Part shown: positions 19,665 to 28,559 of the stretch, in pieces
Layout of the letters: every line of letters begins with the position of its first letter
Numbering within the stretch: position 1 is the first letter of the stretch
Origin: Phaeosaccion multiseriatum
Taxonomy: Eukaryota; Protista; Ochrophyta, other classes
Length of the DNA stretch: 64,000 nt
NCBI GenBank assembly: GCA_965112735.1
Contig: OZ218961.1
Span: 1,240,001 to 1,304,000 of the forward strand
Direction of reading: 5' to 3'
The notes under the pieces: generated by a model
What the model saw: only the letters and a program-made list of their open reading frames with translations
The model's database searches: none
What the model was told of the DNA's origin: nothing
Program-made: the position numbers and the translations under genes

Positions 19665-21040
19665 GAAGAAGCAAGTCAGGATTACGCGGGGAAGCCACAC
19701 AGACACCGTCATCGGCCTCAGCTGGCACAAAGTCCACCGACAGGTTTGTACGTACTCACGCACTGAAGATACTCAGAACAGCTCAAGTAGACTGCATGTA
19801 CCTACCTACGGGCATATGTGCAGAGAGTGGCTGGAAGGGCTTCTTTCGGGCCGTCAACTCTGAACGAGCTGGGTTGTTCGACCCTTGATAGAGATGGCTT
19901 TGTGGGCCCTGTGTGTGCGGGCCTCTGTGTGTGCGCTTCGGTGTGTGTCTCCTCCCTCTTCCCTTCCAAGCAGCCGCTGCGCTCTCTTTTTGTCTCCCTC
20001 ACTCTTTCGTTCTCTCTCTGTCTCCCCCACTCTTTCGTTCTCTCTCTGTCTCCCTCACTCTTTCGTTCTCTCTCTGTCTCCCTCACTCTTTCGTTCTCTC
20101 TCTGTCTTTCTCTCCTTACCTCTCTCCTCTTCCTCTCTCCCCTACCTGTCTCTCCCCCTCTCCTTCCTTCTCTCTCTCCTCTCTCTCTCCTCTCCCGATC
20201 TCTTCTCTCCCCCCTCCTCTCTCCCTCTCCCTCCCCCTCTCTCTCTCTCACTCACACGCACTTTTCCTCCCTCTCTCCATCTACACGACATCACATCACA
20301 CGGAAACCCACCCCTCCACTTGAACAAACAAACAACAGGTGCTGGCAAGCAGTTCCGGCGACAATACCTTGAAGGTGTGGAACGTGACAACCCATCAGTG
20401 CTCCTCCACACGGACAAGCAAGGCGCAAAGCGTGCGCTGGAACGGCACTGAGGTTTCCATCCTCGCCTCGGCAGGGCATGGCTCCTCTTGGACGCACGCA
20501 CCCCTGAGAAGGTGCAGAGTGTGCCACTGTCGGCGGATCCTGAATGCCTGGGACGGAACCCCCACCGACCCGCTGAGCTCATCTCAGGCACGGAGGACGG
20601 CTTGTTGACTTGTAGGGGCGTGCGGCAGTTGGACAAGGTGCTGTGAGGGAAGGTGACGGCGCATGAAGGGGGGGTGTCGGCTTTCTCCTTCGCGCCTTCC
20701 GTGCCAGGCTTCCTGGCCACGCACGTGCTGGGATGACAAGACGGTCAAGCTGTAGGACGTTGATGCGTGTTGCAATAGTAGTAGTAGTGGTGGTGGTGGT
20801 GGTGGTGGTGGTGGTGGTGGTGGTGGTGGTGGCGGAGGGAAGCAAAAGAAGCGGCAGCAGCAGGGAAGGCCGCTAGAGATTGCGTCCCGTACCATGGCTG
20901 TGGGCAAGCTGGTTTCGGTGGCCTTTTATCCGGATTCTCCCTTTCTGTTGGCCTGTGGCGGCGCCAAGGGCACCCTTGCGCTATGCATGGCACACGGATG
21001 AGAACATCGCTGTCAGTGCGCGCCTCTCGAGCCGGGCAGG
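19665..21040 (+). pseudogene. PWP1: PWP1-like WD40 protein, C-terminal half, degenerate
   Basis: SHTDTVIGLSWHKVHRQ / VLASSSGDNTLKVWNV / AHEGGVSAFSFAPSVPGFLA / DKTVKL*DV / VGKLVSVAFYPDSPFLLACGGAKG follow the PWP1 repeat order. In-frame stops at ~20644 and 20753 plus frameshifts. Confidence 0.7.
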
Positions 21041-21317: not shown

Positions 21318-21822
21318 AGCGGTGGCGAGAAGGCTCCCAGCGCAGGCGCAACTTCATCGTCCCTACTAACCGCCGTACAACGGCATCCGCATGCCCATTG
21401 CTTCATCCCCACCGGCAAAACACTAACCCCAAAACCCATCGCTCCCCCTTAAGTATAATCACCAAAACGGTGGCGAGAAGGCTCCCAGCGCAGGCGCAAC
21501 TCCATCGTCCCTACTAACCGCCGTACAACGGCATCCGCATGCCCATTGCTTCATCCCCACCGGCGAAACACTAACCCCAAAACCCATCCCTCCCCCGTAT
21601 GCTACCAAGTATAATCACCAAAGCGGTGGCGAGAAGGCTCCCAGCGCAGGCGCAACTCCATCGTCCCTACTAACCGCCGTACAACGGCATCATCCGCATG
21701 CCCATTGCTTCATCCCCACCGGCGAAACACTAACCCCAAAACCCATCGCTCCCCCTTAAGTATAATCACCAAAGCGGTGGCGAGAAGGCTCCCAGCGCAG
21801 GCGCAACTCCATCGTCCCTACT
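21318..21822. repeat. ~150-bp tandem repeat, 3.3 copies, just downstream of the MACPF-LRR gene
   Basis: CGGTGGCGAGAAGGCTCCCAGCGCAGG restarts at 21320, 21468, 21624 and 21775. Confidence 0.93.
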
Positions 21823-21906: not shown

Positions 21907-24900
21907 TCAACCATTGTACACAGCCTTTGCCCAACTCGGTGCGACCTCACTGCTACATCCAAAGGGCAGGTGGGAATTGACAACCAACTTCAACTCTTCC
22001 CTCATCAGCAAATTTCTGGAACTCTGCACTCCTTCAAGGTACCTACGGTAACGCATTGCACCCCCGAATCCGTAGCGCACATACTCGCGGTGAGTTACTA
22101 CCGTGACATTAAAAGTCCGCGTAATGAGCAGGTCGCACCAGCCGCAGTATCGTACATCAAGGGTCCGTAGATTGGGGCAGTTGCCGTGGGGTCCCAAGGG
22201 GTCAGACTTGCAAACCCAGTTGAACGAGAAGTTTCCAACGAAAAGAAACGTTGGGGAGCGCGGGGTGCGTTTCTGGTTGGCCTCCCCATAGGCTCTCGCG
22301 TCGAGAGACGTGAGCTCGTCGAGGGTCGGAGGCGTGTAGTTCTCATCCCACGGCCAGTCCTTGAAGTTATAGCTGAGATCGATACGTACCACACTCGGCA
22401 TGTTGGCGTTCTGCATGACTTCCCCCCCGAGATGGTTTCGGCTAAGATTGACGTCCTCGAGGAGTTTGTGCGTCCACACATCAGGGTGAATGCTACCATC
22501 GAGCAGGTTCTCAGAAAGGTTGAGAGTCTTCAGCCGTGGCAGCTCCTTGAGGCTTGGCACGCCCCCCGTGAGATTGTTCGAGCTCAGATCCACGCTGGTG
22601 AGGGACTTGAGCTTCGAAAGGATGCCGCTCTTCTCCAGCGTCCCCCCCATGCCGATGTGGCTCAAGGACAAGGTCGTGAGGGCAGAGAAGATTCCGGCGT
22701 CGAAGATGGGCAGCACCGGCGCAAAGCCTGTTTCCGCGTCTGTTGATGGCTGGCCGTTGCGCACCTCAATCGTGGCTATCCGCCCCTCCTCGGTGAGGGG
22801 GGCGGTGCCCTCCAAGTTTGCGAAGCTTAGATCAGGCCCATCCTCCTCCAACTGAGCCCAACCGGCCGGCTTGGGGTTCCATTTCGCCATCTGCAGGGCG
22901 TCATACACAACCTTCAAGCCAGCCTTGTCGCGTGATAAGACCCGTACCCTGGCTTGAGGCTCCAGCTGCTTAAACACTAGCTCTTGTCCGGCCAGATTCA
23001 AGCTTTCCTCGAAGCGAGCCCACTCCTTGCCATTCTCATACTTTCCCCGAACAACTGCGTAGGAACCAGCAGTTGCCTCCTTTTGGGCGAGCAGCACGAC
23101 GGCACCCACCACCTGCCCATCAGAGGCGGCGAACTGGTCTTTGACCACGTCCAGGAAGTCCGACAGAGTTCCGTCAGGCATTGGCTGCTGCTGGACTCGG
23201 GCGGCTTCCATAAGCACCTCCGCCGCTGCGTACGCGATGGCAGACAGCTCTTCCACGCTGTCGACTTGATCAAGGGGCAGATCGCCCAGTGTCACGAGCT
23301 GCAGCACGCTCTCTTGAAGGTCGTTGTTCACTCGACGTGGAGCGTTCCGGTTAATCACCTCTCTAACGGCCAGGGGCACGGTCTCGGCCTCATAAAGCAA
23401 ATGAGCCCAGTTTCTGGCTCGAGACTGACGGGCGGCTTGAATCAAGTTGATGCACTGCTGATCGACGGGCACGTTGTACTCGTGGAGATCTAGTGACACA
23501 GCAAGGAAGAAAGAGGCCGCGACAACAAGAGGGGAACGAACGAGGTCGATGAGTTAGAGAGACTTCAGGGAGAGAGAAGCGAACATAATAATGCTCCTCC
23601 CCCAATACACACACAATTAAGGCATTGTCTCGCACCTCTTCGAAGCAGTTCGTCGATGGAGACGAGCGCGGAGAGGGGCCCTCTGTCGATGATGGCCCAG
23701 CTCGAGTTATCTGAGAACAAAGCTGTTGCGAAGGCCTCGGCTGTCGCAGCGTTCGGCCCGAGAGACTTTGCTCCGAGTTTTTTTACAAAAAATGAAAAAA
23801 AATGGGGGGCAGCGGCGGGGCACAGGAATAGAGAGGTTAGAGTCACGAATGAAGTCGCAGTTGGACTCACCCTTCGCCACTCTTTTCAAGACGAGGCGGG
23901 ATGCCACGGACGCATCAAAAGTGGAGTGAAATCCCTCTCCACACCAACAACTTACCCGGACGTAGCTGGTGTACATGGCTTGCGTTTTCGTTGTTTGATT
24001 CGCACCGTTGTCGGCGGCGTCATGGAAGTCCGCGCCCCCACTGCTCGAGGCCTGGCTGAAGCTGGCCGACGCCGAGGCAGTCACGCCATAGTAGCTACCC
24101 GCGACAGATGCCTCTGTGGCACTGGACTTGCCCTTGCTCTCTTTGCTTGCCTCAGCAGTAGCTCTCATGAGCGACGAAGTATGGACCTGATAAAGTTTGT
24201 TTAAGGGGCGTGGGGTACGAGTTGGAGCGAAGCGAGAAAACTGAGCGGGGAAGTAGCAGCTGCGACGAAAGCGACGGCAAGGGGGACACTGATACATGAA
24301 TTGCTGAGAGCGCACACCCGAGCTCACCTCCTTGGTTGTCGTGGTAGTCGTGGTATGAAAGAAGACCCCACCCATCAAATGAGTGCCGGAACTGCACAGA
24401 CAGAAGGGAAGTGAAAGAATGCGAAAGAGAGCAGTGTGAAGGAGTGGAAAGAATGGAAAGAACGGACAGACACCTGCAGCCTCGAGCTTCCCTCGCGGCT
24501 CTTCCTTCACAACGTGTACTGCCGTGTTTGCTTCCTGCCTCACCTCACGTGGGAGCCAAAGAGGTCGAGGAAGCTCCTGGCATCGCGTAGTGACCTGACT
24601 TTGCTGGCAATTTCAATGACCTCGTCGCTCAGTCTCATGTCAACCACGGGGATGCGGAAGGACTTCATGGGGCAGATGATGTACTCCACAACTGATTAAG
24701 GTCGAGACGGCAAAGGATGACAAAGCAGAGGCCATCATTAACACGCTCAAGGTGAGTGGAGTGCTTGGTGTCAGGGGACTTACTGGTGGCGGTGGTGGTC
24801 TTAGCCTGGTCGCTCGTCGTACTCGTCGCTTCGGTCGTACTAGACGTCTGCGAGTTGGAAGAATTGGTTTGCGAGTGACTGGCGCTGACCTTATTCCCCC

Positions 24901-26226
24901 ACCCGCTCACGCTGGCACTTCCTCCCACAGAGGTGTGGGCCGACTCGGCTGCCGTCATGCCAGAAGACTTGGTCGAGTTGTGGAAGGAAGCTACAACTTC
25001 ATTGGAAGTTGTCTTCATGACGCGAGCCTCAAAGGGGACGTTGGGGCCTCGCCTGCCAACAGATGGAGCAAACATGACGCGAAGGAAGACGGGTCAAGGA
25101 AGGAAGAGGGGCAGCGGCGGCAGTGGGAGGGGGGCGACTTGGTGGCTACCTATAGACGACGAGAGCTCTCAATTGAAAGCAGAAGCGGGGAAAAAAGTAC
25201 TTGCATCCCCCCCTCCATTTAGCAAATGAAGAAAGAGGAGTCATCGTCACCACACTCACAAGTCAACGTGCTCCGGGGTTTTGAGCACCGGGGCCAGCGG
25301 AACCCTCGACAGCTCCTCGACATTCGGAAAGAGGTTAATTCCTGTTGATCGAAAGCATCAGCGTCGGGGGGGAATCAAACGAATGCAACACAAGAGAGTG
25401 GGTAGGTAAGTGGGACTGGAGGGAGGCAAAGATGAAAGTCAGGGAGAGAGTCCCAACCGAGCTCACCGTATAGGGCTGCGCCCCCGGAGCAAGCAGCGAC
25501 AAGCTTTTCGTCGGTGTCATACGGATTGAAGGAGCTACTCACTCCAGCCAGGATGCCGGTCTGTGCCTGAGCGGTGGCGAGCAGCGACTCGGAGCTCGTC
25601 ACCTGTCCTTCCCAGCCCTCTCTCGCCGCCACCTGTCCATACAGTTTCAATATATAAGAGAGGGTCAGAGTGAGAGGACACGTAGCTCTCTACCCTTGGC
25701 AAATGCACTGTTTTCGTATACATCCCTCCCCAACCCGGGACACCAAGCGATCTTCTCATTGCCAACATTGATCGAACGGTCAATCTGCAATCAAGGTTTC
25801 GAGGAGCACAATGCGCCCGGGCCTCCGCCCCTGCCTCTACCCGCCAAAACAACGAAAAAGTTGATGGACTCACCCTCGCTTTGGCCGCCTCCACCCTGCT
25901 CCTCTGCCTCTCTTCTGCGCCGTCGAGTGTGTCACTGACGTCGACCTTGGCCAGCAACTCGTCCGCCTCTTGCCGCGACTGGCGCACGCGACCCCGCTCC
26001 TCCTCGATGAGCCTGGCGTTGCGCAGCTGGGCGGCCTCCTCTCTCTCGCGCGCGAGCTCTTGTTCCTCTCGGTGAATGGTGTTGCTCTTCATGGCCTTGG
26101 CCTTGTTGGTGATGATGCGCGTATCGCCTTCGTGTTCCTGAGGTAAGGTAGGAGAGGAAGGGAGGGGGTTTTGGGTGTGGAAATAATTGAGGAGCAAGCG
26201 CGGCCTGCTCAGCCCATCCACACACA

Positions 26227-26261
<35 letters not shown>

Positions 26262-28559
26262 GGGGGGGGGGAGAACCACACGACAAGAAGAAAAGCAAAA
26301 TAGAGCACTCACCCTGGCCAACTTGTTCACGTCGTCGTCGCTGAGCTTGCTGGCGGTTCGAATGCCCTTGTCTTCCAACGTCTGTGCCGCTGCCAGCCCT
26401 ACCCCGAACTCCATCGCCTCCTTGCGAATGGGAGGGGCGTTGGGGGCGTTGGCGAAGAAGCTCTCCAGCGTGTGCCGCTCCGTGCTGGTGATGGCCTCGG
26501 AAGGGCCCCCTGTTGAGTTGTCCGAAGGCTGCGCAAACTCGGGCTCCTCCTCCTCATCGCCTGCCCACAGGGGCAGAGGCTCCTCCTCATCGCCTGCCAA
26601 CTGGGGCAGTGTGGTGCCGTCGTTGGAAGGGGCAAGCTCCGCCAGGGGGAGCTTCAGCGCGTAGGAGGCGAATTGCAACTTGGGAGCAGCAAGCTGGTGC
26701 AGTGGCCGAGGCAACGACGACAACACAAGGGGCCGGGCAGGGTGGACTGGGGGTCAAAACACACAAACAAGCAAGTCATCGGGTGGCTGCATGCACAACT
26801 TTACTATCGATGAGCCACCCTTACCGCGTTTCCACGTGGCCTCTCCACTGCCTTGTGATCGATAGCCCACTGCACGCTCTGCCATTGGGAGTTCGACAGC
26901 GCCGCCTCTGTCTTCCAGTTGCGTGCCACGTTACGGGCCCACTGCCTCTCCTTGGGGTCAATTCCCTTCGCCAGGAACAAGCCCCAGAGCTCAAACTCCG
27001 GCAGCAAACAGTCAAGCAGCATGGGCTGCTGCACTTTCTGGCCCTGAGTGCGCCTGTCGCGGTCCTCAACGAGAAATTTGGCCAAGATATTGACGTCGTT
27101 CAGAGTTTGATGTGCCGCGATGAGGCGTACGCTCACCTCCCCCCAGTTCTGCGCCATTTTGTTCTCGTTGACGACGTCTTTGATTTCCTGCGAAAGAAGA
27201 TTGTTGCACATGGGCGGCAGGGCATCCCTCACCGTGCCCAGGTCTTTCGCGGGGAGCACCTCCGAATCACTGGAGTAGACGTCATACACCCGCCCGCACC
27301 ACTTTTGGGCGAAAGCCTCTATGGCCCCCGGAGTATCACACTCGTTGAAGTCCTTCATGATATCACTATCACCGCCACTATCATTGGACTTGTCTGTCAC
27401 ACGCGAAGGGCGAGAGGACAAGCAAAGCGCGATTCACGTTAGTCAAAGGGGAGGGAGAGCGGCGGCCAGCATACGCCCACCACGCACTCACCATTGTCGG
27501 TGTAGATGTACACGCTCCATTCGTTGTAGCTCTTAAACCAAAGCATTTGGTCGTCAGGAACGCCCTTACGCACAACCGCTCTTTCGTACACGTCGTTCAA
27601 GACCGCGCCCAATTCGTCGAACGGACGAGTGTACCTTTTTTGGCGCACGCAAAGGAGGGCAGTAGGAGTGTTTAGGTAAATACAGAGAAACTATTTGGCA
27701 GCAAACAAGAATCGCATCAGCATGGTGGCAAGGAATGCCCTTCCCATACTACCACACAAACTCACATTCCGTGGTAGGGGTCGAGGAAGTGGCAAGTCTC
27801 GTCGACCTCGTCAACGAAGATGCCTACATCTCTCCACTGTTCGAAGTTTGAGTTGACTAACTGGAGGAAGACCAGCACGTTACGGGGTCTGCTCCTCCGT
27901 ACACCAAACCTCCCCCTGTTTTTCCACGCTGAGTCAATAGCCTGGACGATCTCATCGATGACGGTCTTGGTGTTGTTCACCTTCGTACTGGCCATGTCGT
28001 AGTATTGCGGCGCTCCCTTCGTCCTGCGCGGAAGCGGCCCCGACAAAGTCCACTTGTTCTCCTCAGCCACAATTTTTGGCAGTGACTCGTTCCAGAATAG
28101 CTCCCCATGAGTGTTTGCCCTGACCTTTGGTGGCAAGGTTTCAAGAAGAGCGAAGAAGTCGCTGGGCAGCCGAAAAGAAGTGGCTGCTTTGCCTGCAATA
28201 AACCGGGCCCAGTAAAGCAGGCTCAAGATGTTCGGTCCTCTTGATGGGTGAAGAAAGCCATGTTCAATGAAGAATAGTGCGAGGAAGTTCATCCATTGTT
28301 TGGCTTCACGTTTGACTTCTAGTTGTTCCCGCGTCAAGTCTCCTTTCTCTCCCAACTCAAGCGGGGCCTCGTGCTGTGTGATGGATGTGTCCGCAGGAAC
28401 GACATCCAGCAGTGCTCTCGCCAAGTTGAAGGGCTGGTCGGGCTCCGGCCGGGCGTCCGTACTGAAAAGCGCGACGACGGGAATTGGTGAGGGTGGTGTG
28501 AAGCCACGCAGATATTCCAATGCGCCATCTTTCACCGCTTCCGAGGATGGGCGAGGCAT
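21907..28559 (-). CDS. ~1607-aa protein: N-terminal region, coiled coil, GVIN1/VLIG-type MACPF-like domain and C-terminal leucine-rich repeats; 13 exons
   Basis: Exons 28559-27766, 27634-27492, 27393-26825, 26693-26313, 26137-25874, 25632-25467, 25341-25260, 25052-24784, 24691-24544, 24391-24328, 24186-23956, 23765-23636, 23489-21907. All are GT-AG and in phase (4824 nt). Motifs CSGGAALYGI, FLDLFGSHVSSGTHLMGGVFF, NSSWAIIDRG; LRRs LTSVDLSSNNLTG, LKTLNLSENLLDG, VNLSRNHLGG. Confidence 0.85.

Follow-up and report, generated by a model that had tools for sequence, protein, structure and literature searches.

Proteins with a MACPF domain are the main pore-forming killers of animal immunity and, to our knowledge, nearly all of those described are either secreted or act inside vesicles. 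For the giant GTPase GVIN1, the paper describing its coatomer calls the part of interest here only "an N-terminal domain" and does not mention MACPF (10.1101/2025.03.24.645074). The gene studied here lies on the minus strand of a 64,000-nucleotide stretch of the Phaeosaccion multiseriatum genome (contig OZ218961.1, positions 1,240,001 to 1,304,000, hereafter the window) and encodes a predicted MACPF domain, related to that N-terminal part, followed by a helical linker and leucine-rich repeats (LRRs). The host genome searched comprises 67 Mb in 22 contigs, the window corresponding to C12:1240001-1304000; its DNA is eukaryotic in character, with a GC content of about 57% and short GT-AG introns.

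Eight exons bounded by AG acceptors and GT donors can be joined without a change of phase, giving an open frame of 2673 nucleotides that codes for 890 residues. A first-pass annotation of this DNA had reported thirteen exons joining in phase; the joining stands while the number does not, as there are eight between 25632 and 21907 and thirteen only when the gene is followed back to an ATG at 28559. Position 25632, which had been taken for the boundary of the gene, is an internal acceptor, and the gene runs further upstream. The observation as a whole was nevertheless borne out: the spliced frame, the quoted motifs and the domains are all there, and the peptide strings occur in the order claimed (DEKLVAACSGGAALYGI, two Ser/Thr-rich segments, VEYIICPMKSF..MRLSD, FLDLFGSHVSSGTHLMGGVFF and GPNAATAEAFATALFSDNSSWAIIDRG). 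The spliced protein matches independent database proteins with E-values down to 1.9e-76 (local BLASTP), and therefore not by chance. Intact and made up of several exons, the gene codes for a soluble protein of about 1280 residues (1607 in a longer model), which carries in order a lineage-specific N-terminal domain, a short conserved helical motif, a probable coiled coil, the MACPF domain, a helical linker, five to six LRRs and a tail. The features of the 890-residue model are the following.

25632-25467, 25341-25260, 25052-24784, 24691-24544, 24391-24328, 24186-23956, 23765-23636 and 23489-21907, minus strand: exons of the 890-residue model (GT-AG, in phase)
23636..25632, minus strand: MACPF domain, seven exons from 25632-25467 to 23765-23636 (in-phase GT-AG junctions, family hidden Markov model, 42% identity to the Ectocarpus homologue P0099)
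24785..25006, minus strand: first helical cluster (CH1/TMH1 equivalent), 74 residues, 65% Ser/Thr/Ala/Gly (mapped from the P0099 model)
24367..24560, minus strand: signature-like motif F-G-S-H-V-x7-G-G, split by the intron 24543-24392 (read from the sequence)
23980..24186, minus strand: second helical cluster (CH2/TMH2 equivalent), 69 residues, 61% Ser/Thr/Ala/Gly (mapped from the P0099 model)
22690..23489, minus strand: helical linker of about 265 residues after the MACPF domain (first part of the last exon)
22318..22689, minus strand: five LRRs of the plant-specific LxxLxLxxNxLxGxxP type (Pfam LRR_4, LRR_1 and LRR_8)
21907..22317, minus strand: C-terminal tail of about 135 residues with several Cys and no assigned fold (predicted local distance difference test, pLDDT, below 50)
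21909-21907, minus strand: stop codon TGA, end of the 890-residue frame

A profile (A1) of the 138-residue stretch encoded by exons 3 and 4, between which several paralogues have no intron, was searched against 1.84 billion representative proteins and retrieved 98 relatives, with which the spliced window protein forms local BLASTP alignments of 300-480 residues at 26-43% identity. A family hidden Markov model (HMM) was built from 32 database rows of a second alignment (A2), without vertebrate or window sequences, and matches the spliced protein with an E-value of 8.8e-88 over residues 35-368 of the 890-residue model. The Pfam MACPF family (PF01823, cut-off 21.5) is exceeded in three relatives, P0098 (29.8 bits), P0099 (24.5-26.8) and P0104 (22.6), and is found at E < 0.1 in 13 family members of A2, the best at 1.4e-8. 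The membership of the window protein follows from its match to an HMM whose family members pass PF01823. When the single exons of the window were scanned with Pfam, only LRRs were matched and none of the MACPF exons, and a genome-wide scan with PF01823 found nothing, which is due to the MACPF exons being individually too short; two of ten exon-3/4 pieces do reach an E-value of 0.0017. Profiles A1 and A2 gave no meaningful match among PDB sequences.

The fold was modelled with AlphaFold2 on residues 207-549 of P0099 (Ectocarpus CBJ28670), which are 42% identical to the window protein in a nearly gapless alignment. The model (mean pLDDT 78.9, predicted template modelling score 0.77) has long bent strands flanked by two helical clusters. 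A Foldseek search of the PDB with this model returned MACPF structures for all of the top 50 matches, with pleurotolysin B first (E 7.8e-7) and C9, perforin, GNIP1Aa, TgPLP1, Mpf2Ba1 and MPEG1 among the others. VIA-align ranked pleurotolysin B highest as well (Z 12.6 over 239 residues, root-mean-square deviation 5.2), followed by perforin-2, C8, perforin and C9; about 30 entries reached Z ≥ 8, all of them MACPF, and the cholesterol-dependent cytolysins (CDCs) followed at Z 5-6. The fold search of the ESM-Atlas matched MACPF clusters only. The first-pass annotation had called this region MACPF-like and proposed comparing its middle third with MACPF/CDC folds, and that comparison, made via P0099, matched MACPF/CDC structures only. 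Together with the family HMM and the occurrence of PF01823 in relatives, it identifies this middle third, at the level of sequence and homologue model, as a MACPF domain. A pore former of the aerolysin or gasdermin type was considered and ruled out, the fold matches being all MACPF/CDC.

The F-G-S-H-V-x7-G-G motif sits between the two helical clusters, as it does in perforin-type proteins, and its FGSHV and GG are conserved columns of A2. In the P0099 model the first cluster comprises the helices of residues 83-109 and a low-confidence loop, and the second comprises the helix of residues 231-255 and the loop that follows it.

The last exon carries the remaining modules. Its linker is 43-52% identical in seven paralogues, and the first 110 residues or so fall within the continuous alignment to P0099; the linker (residues 1-275) had no homologue at E ≤ 0.001 among database proteins of 290-920 residues. 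Pfam matched LRR_4 at 34.2 bits (cut-off 27), LRR_1 at 27.7 (cut-off 20.6) and also LRR_8, and a sixth, irregular repeat is possible at about 22179-22108. An AlphaFold2 model of the window's own 526-residue last exon has a pLDDT of 56 overall, with the linker helical at low confidence, and reaches 82-92 at residues ~260-380, where five to six short strands follow each other at regular LRR spacing. The count of about six LRRs previously given for this gene is close to that of the model. A database search with the whole last exon retrieved only plant LRR receptors, over 13-40% of the query, because the repeats are of the plant-specific type and LRR words swamp the candidates. The C-terminal tail had no usable match in the protein atlas. 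A receptor of the nucleotide-binding LRR (NLR) type was ruled out, as no NACHT or NB-ARC nucleoside triphosphatase (NTPase) is found by Pfam and a helical linker without match stands between the MACPF domain and the LRRs. Neither of the two candidate N-termini is hydrophobic on the Kyte-Doolittle scale, a crude one, in agreement with the signal peptide having been reported as lacking. The highest 19-residue mean, 1.53, lies within the LRR cap and is below the usual threshold for a membrane helix. Given this hydropathy scan and the start of the MACPF domain 430-760 residues into the protein, the protein is likely cytosolic.

The relatives of the MACPF domain link it to the VLIG/GVIN1 giant GTPases. 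Among the 98 proteins are a coral "interferon-induced very large GTPase 1-like" protein, a "VLIG-type G domain-containing" protein of Saprolegnia, an "up-regulator of cell proliferation" of Pelomyxa, and rotifer and jellyfish proteins of 1900-2500 residues; these bear the Pfam domain URGCP_GTPase (PF25683). Searching from the jellyfish domain led on to GVIN1-like proteins of marsupials and birds, which the family HMM matches at residues ~155-487 with E-values from 7.8e-55 to 1.6e-45, and language-model features of this vertebrate region match MACPF clusters at 0.97. The resemblance to the N-terminus of GVIN1, which the first-pass annotation had noted, is thus confirmed by the HMM, and by sequence the window domain and the N-terminal domain of VLIG/GVIN1-type giant GTPases, those of vertebrates included, fall into one subfamily. 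This subfamily is eukaryote-wide: it stands before URGCP/VLIG GTPases in animals, an amoebozoan and an oomycete, and before lectin-type domains in brown algae and diatoms. Pfam matched no GTPase in any exon scanned of the window gene, and the whole genome has only two sub-threshold matches to PF25683, on C16 and C3, neither of them near a paralogue. That the gene codes for a true VLIG GTPase is ruled out by the absence of the GTPase domain, the N-terminal MACPF-type domain being all that is common. In the searchable literature, only coincidental co-mentions connect GVIN, VLIG or URGCP with MACPF, perforin-like or pore-forming proteins, and none was found on MACPF in Ectocarpus. The Pfam accession PF26772 is common to jellyfish and vertebrate VLIG proteins, and newer Pfam entries (PF26771-PF26773) may already describe some of this relationship, as may automatic database names of the kind "MACPF domain-containing protein".

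About ten paralogues of the gene are present in the genome, largely in tandem clusters and some of them truncated: four on C1 (6.575-6.611 Mb), three on C10 (349-370 kb), two on C4 and one on C3. No GTPase lies beside them. Four copies (L013, L014, L015 and L017) have three QxW repeats (RicinB_lectin_2, E 2e-20) in place of the window-type tail, while L016 and L018 share the tail of the window protein; the MACPF-LRR-ricin-B arrangement was confirmed for the C1 and C10 copies. The evolutionary relations of the domain were inferred from a quick, unrooted maximum-likelihood tree of 37 domains with support values of the SH-like approximate likelihood ratio test (SH-aLRT) only, in which grouping is partly by similarity and four long branches are unreliable. 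The window domain groups with those of Ectocarpus, Cladosiphon, a diatom and four further proteins (clade support 100), and all GTPase-linked domains are on the other side of this stramenopile clade's branch. The C-termini within the clade are jacalin, ricin-B and F5/8-C (discoidin) domains according to Pfam, and "bulb-type lectin" and "fucolectin" according to source names; no LRRs were found in the database homologues scanned. It had been suggested that the GTPase was replaced by LRRs. There is indeed no GTPase, but the tree, having no root, gives only two architectures across a branch and not a replacement.

Two sets of copies differ from the rest. L007/L019 (G000:C1:6574153-6579199) is a decayed paralogue in which the first half of the MACPF domain is missing, the N-terminal domain running in one open frame straight into the equivalent of exon 4, and whose linker-LRR frame stops after 322 residues. 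L009 and L010 (G000:C4:345892-360926) and L011 (G000:C10:347581-350721) form a divergent subfamily, 43-45% identical in exon 4, with the same order of MACPF exons, an FGS motif without His and a first cluster rich in Lys and Glu; they have no match to the linker-LRR exon of the window.

By analogy with known pore formers, the protein could be a MACPF effector that, once bound to its target, forms a ring and perforates a membrane in defence, be it that of an invader or of a damaged compartment inside the cell, a reading in which we have about as much confidence as doubt. The C-terminal module (LRRs and tail, or LRRs and ricin-B in the paralogues) would bind the target and so concentrate the MACPF domains, which would pack next to one another as a ring; the two Ser/Thr/Ala/Gly-rich clusters would turn into beta-hairpins that pierce the membrane to which the protein is bound. 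The most likely target would be the membrane of an invader or of a damaged compartment inside the cell, with death of the host cell as a possible alternative outcome. A role in defence is suggested by the tandem clusters with decayed copies, the swappable recognition modules and the kinship with the domain of an interferon-induced GTPase. The first-pass annotation had read the protein as a single-chain sensor-executor and candidate cell-death immune receptor, which is plausible as a hypothesis; that the LRRs gate or autoinhibit the MACPF domain is speculation.

Several observations weigh against this defensive pore. The classical MACPF signature is Y/W-G-T/S-H-F/Y-x6-G-G, from which that of the window departs at three positions (F in place of Y/W, V in place of F/Y, and seven residues rather than six in the spacer), so that of the GSH-x(n)-GG likeness proposed initially G-S-H and G-G are kept and the exact classical form is not. 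The two segments described as hairpin-like fit in position, length and composition, and their putative capacity to form hairpins is read from these features only; the strongest hydrophobic alternation over 10 residues was equalled in 1071 of 2000 shuffles for the first and in 899 for the second, and an amphipathic alternation better than that of shuffled sequences is thus not seen. The fold was modelled on the 42%-identical P0099 and not on the window protein itself, and signal peptide and membrane helix are unseen by a hydropathy scan only, with two models for the 5' end. The four runs that hold the locus (genomic contigs) cover introns and exons alike and have no splice joints, and consequently behave as DNA of one sample. 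Moreover, several MACPF proteins are not lytic, and the ligands of LRRs and lectins are usually encountered outside the cytosol.

A non-lytic MACPF protein, acting as a scaffold, membrane-binding module or regulator in the manner of plant CAD1/NSL1, astrotactin or Torso-like and using its LRRs for signalling contacts, is the strongest of the alternatives, although we regard it as rather unlikely. It would account for the variant signature motif and for Ser/Thr-rich segments without significant alternation. Astrotactin-2 is among the fold matches (Z 7.9), plant MACPF proteins are described as immune regulators (PMC9369274; 10.1101/2021.01.28.428637), and the GVIN1 paper reports coats around bacteria, the word pore being absent from it (10.1101/2025.03.24.645074). 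It agrees less well with the clusters being both of full length (74 and 69 residues) and of a Ser/Thr/Ala/Gly composition like that of pore formers, with the best fold matches being the proven pore formers pleurotolysin B, perforin-2, C8/C9 and perforin, and with lectin-type partner domains, which are typical of pore-forming toxins.

Somewhat less probable still is a toxin stored against grazers or competitors, whose LRR and lectin modules would aim it at foreign cell surfaces. Its release by wounding or lysis of the cell would make a signal peptide unnecessary. Most C-terminal modules of the clade bind carbohydrates (jacalin, ricin-B and F5/8-C and, by source name, bulb-type lectin and fucolectin), such modules usually meet their ligands outside the cytosol, and the family is expanded in tandem clusters, all of which would suit a toxin; the sister group of the domain, on the other hand, is found in cytosolic interferon-type GTPases, and the long N-terminal extension and the helical motif common to those GTPases suggest a regulated assembly inside the cell.

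The last MACPF exon and the LRR exon are separated by an intron of only 146 nucleotides, in phase and GT-AG, and a MACPF exon lies 0.7-1.6 kb upstream of a homologous linker-LRR exon on the same strand in seven paralogous loci. In the paralogue L016, one open frame runs from the last MACPF exon through the intron into the LRR exon, and P0099 aligns unbroken with residues 8-484 of the 890-residue model, about 110 residues into the last exon. These four lines favour, at the sequence level, one gene and one fusion protein, as the first-pass annotation had held. A gene-model artefact, with the LRR exon or the upstream exons on separate transcripts and hence no MACPF-LRR fusion, could draw on runs that behave as DNA and not RNA and on a truly ambiguous 5' end with an exon 1 unique in the genome, but is very improbable given an in-phase intron too small for a promoter, an arrangement kept in seven paralogous loci and a homologue alignment continuous across the junction.

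Upstream of the 890-residue model, further in-phase exons at 26137-25874 and 26693-26313 and one ending at 26825 were placed by enumerating splice options and junctions. They lead to two start models, a short one from the ATG at 27358 (11 exons, 1283 residues) and a long one from the ATG at 28559 (13 exons, 1607 residues).

25874..26137, minus strand: 88-residue exon rich in Glu, Arg, Ala and Gln (CCTCAG acceptor, GTGAGT donor, phase 0 on both sides)
26313..26693, minus strand: exon coding for an acidic linker and for a helical motif, about 55 residues long, that is conserved (acceptor ambiguous: 26693, 26678, 26651 or 26636)
26825..27358, minus strand: exon with the probable start ATG at 27358 and an N-terminal domain of about 170 residues (domain only in this genome's family)
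27492..28559, minus strand: upstream open frame of about 330 residues, two putative exons 28559-27766 and 27634-27492 (splice enumeration)

The short model is favoured, because exon 1 of the long one (264 residues) has no second copy anywhere in the genome and the first Met of five paralogues aligns with 27358. In these paralogues a block 56-62% identical to exon 26825..27358 lies 2.6-2.7 kb upstream of the MACPF exons, and their frames begin with MAE(I/K)IKDV, a sequence that aligns with MKDFNEC of the window. Two observations count against the short model: the stop of the upstream frame is only ~80 bp before the ATG at 27358, and the splice sites at 27492/27393 are good. The upstream frame 28559-27440, for which Pfam gave no match, would belong to the long model, as its first two exons, or form a gene of its own that stops near 27440. 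For the N-terminal domain, Pfam gave no match and the protein atlas nothing usable. The helical motif matches Ectocarpus (E 1e-12), the coral GVIN1-like protein and the rotifer VLIG, in which it is found ~150 residues ahead of the MACPF domain, and the exon 25874..26137, judged by composition only, probably forms a coiled coil that runs up to the MACPF domain. A (CA)13 run at 26219-26244 falls in the intron that separates 26313 from 26137.

Three further features of the window lie outside the gene. A 148-bp unit is repeated 3.3 times (93% matches) at 21318-21822, directly downstream of the stop codon, and a long CT-rich tract of low complexity follows at 19982-20253. On the minus strand, 34888-33128 is an open frame of 587 residues with many repeats of about 45 residues (LPxSLRTLxLG...PLSDLPDGLKEL) and an acidic tail.

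The arrangement of MACPF domain, helical linker and LRRs is a new architectural variant of a known superfamily, and, with its expanded tandem family, the gene offers a concrete candidate for innate defence in a lineage about whose immunity hardly anything is known. From amoebae to birds and marsupials, VLIG/GVIN1 giant GTPases have this domain subfamily as their N-terminal part, a link which seems to have been little noticed. Were the domain active, it would hint at a way in which coats of the GVIN1 type might damage the membranes under them, and the small, GTPase-free versions of this alga and of brown algae would be a tractable system for the activity of GVIN1-type domains. One might go further and propose, as a doubtful conjecture, that this subfamily's MACPF domain is an old immune effector of eukaryotes at large, forming pores inside the cell and still working as a perforin-like domain at the N-terminus of giant interferon-type GTPases, the vertebrate GVIN1-like ones among them. 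Stramenopile algae would have recombined it with LRR or lectin sensors into single-chain sensor-executioner proteins, which would need no NTPase switch to kill an invader or the infected cell.

Compared with known systems, the likeness to NLR/STAND receptors is one of logic only, with the effector at the front and the LRRs at the back. Pleurotolysin B, perforin, perforin-2/MPEG1 and C8/C9 have the same predicted fold, with a bent central sheet and two helical clusters between which a signature-like motif is found; the identity to them is only 8-15%, and the window protein has a variant signature and no signal peptide that was seen. Where pore-forming MACPF proteins have a C2, P2 or EGF/TSP ancillary domain or a partner protein, the window protein has LRRs. 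Plant CAD1/NSL1/AtMACP2 are likewise MACPF proteins of photosynthetic eukaryotes described as tied to immunity and cell death, and the GVIN1-type domain has a streptophyte MACPF atlas cluster among its feature matches (0.91). They are taken to be another MACPF subfamily, regulatory as far as known, for which no LRR, lectin or GTPase fusion is described. Stonustoxin, a fold match in VIA-align (Z 6.3) that combines MACPF with PRY-SPRY and has no signal peptide, and the lectin-coupled pore formers follow the same logic of a pore-forming domain joined to a recognition domain, and lectin toxins such as the snail perivitellin PV2 may resemble the arrangement. The module of the window protein is an LRR, a combination not found among the database homologues scanned, while its relatives and paralogues carry ricin-B, jacalin or discoidin domains. 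The VLIG/GVIN1 GTPases differ from the window gene, which has no GTPase, continues from the domain into linker, LRRs and tail, and belongs to a separate stramenopile clade (SH-aLRT 100). What they have in common with it is a domain of about 330 residues homologous along its whole length, the motifs SGGxALYG, FRIP, FGSHVxxGxxxxGG and WxxIDRG within it, and the short helical motif upstream of it.

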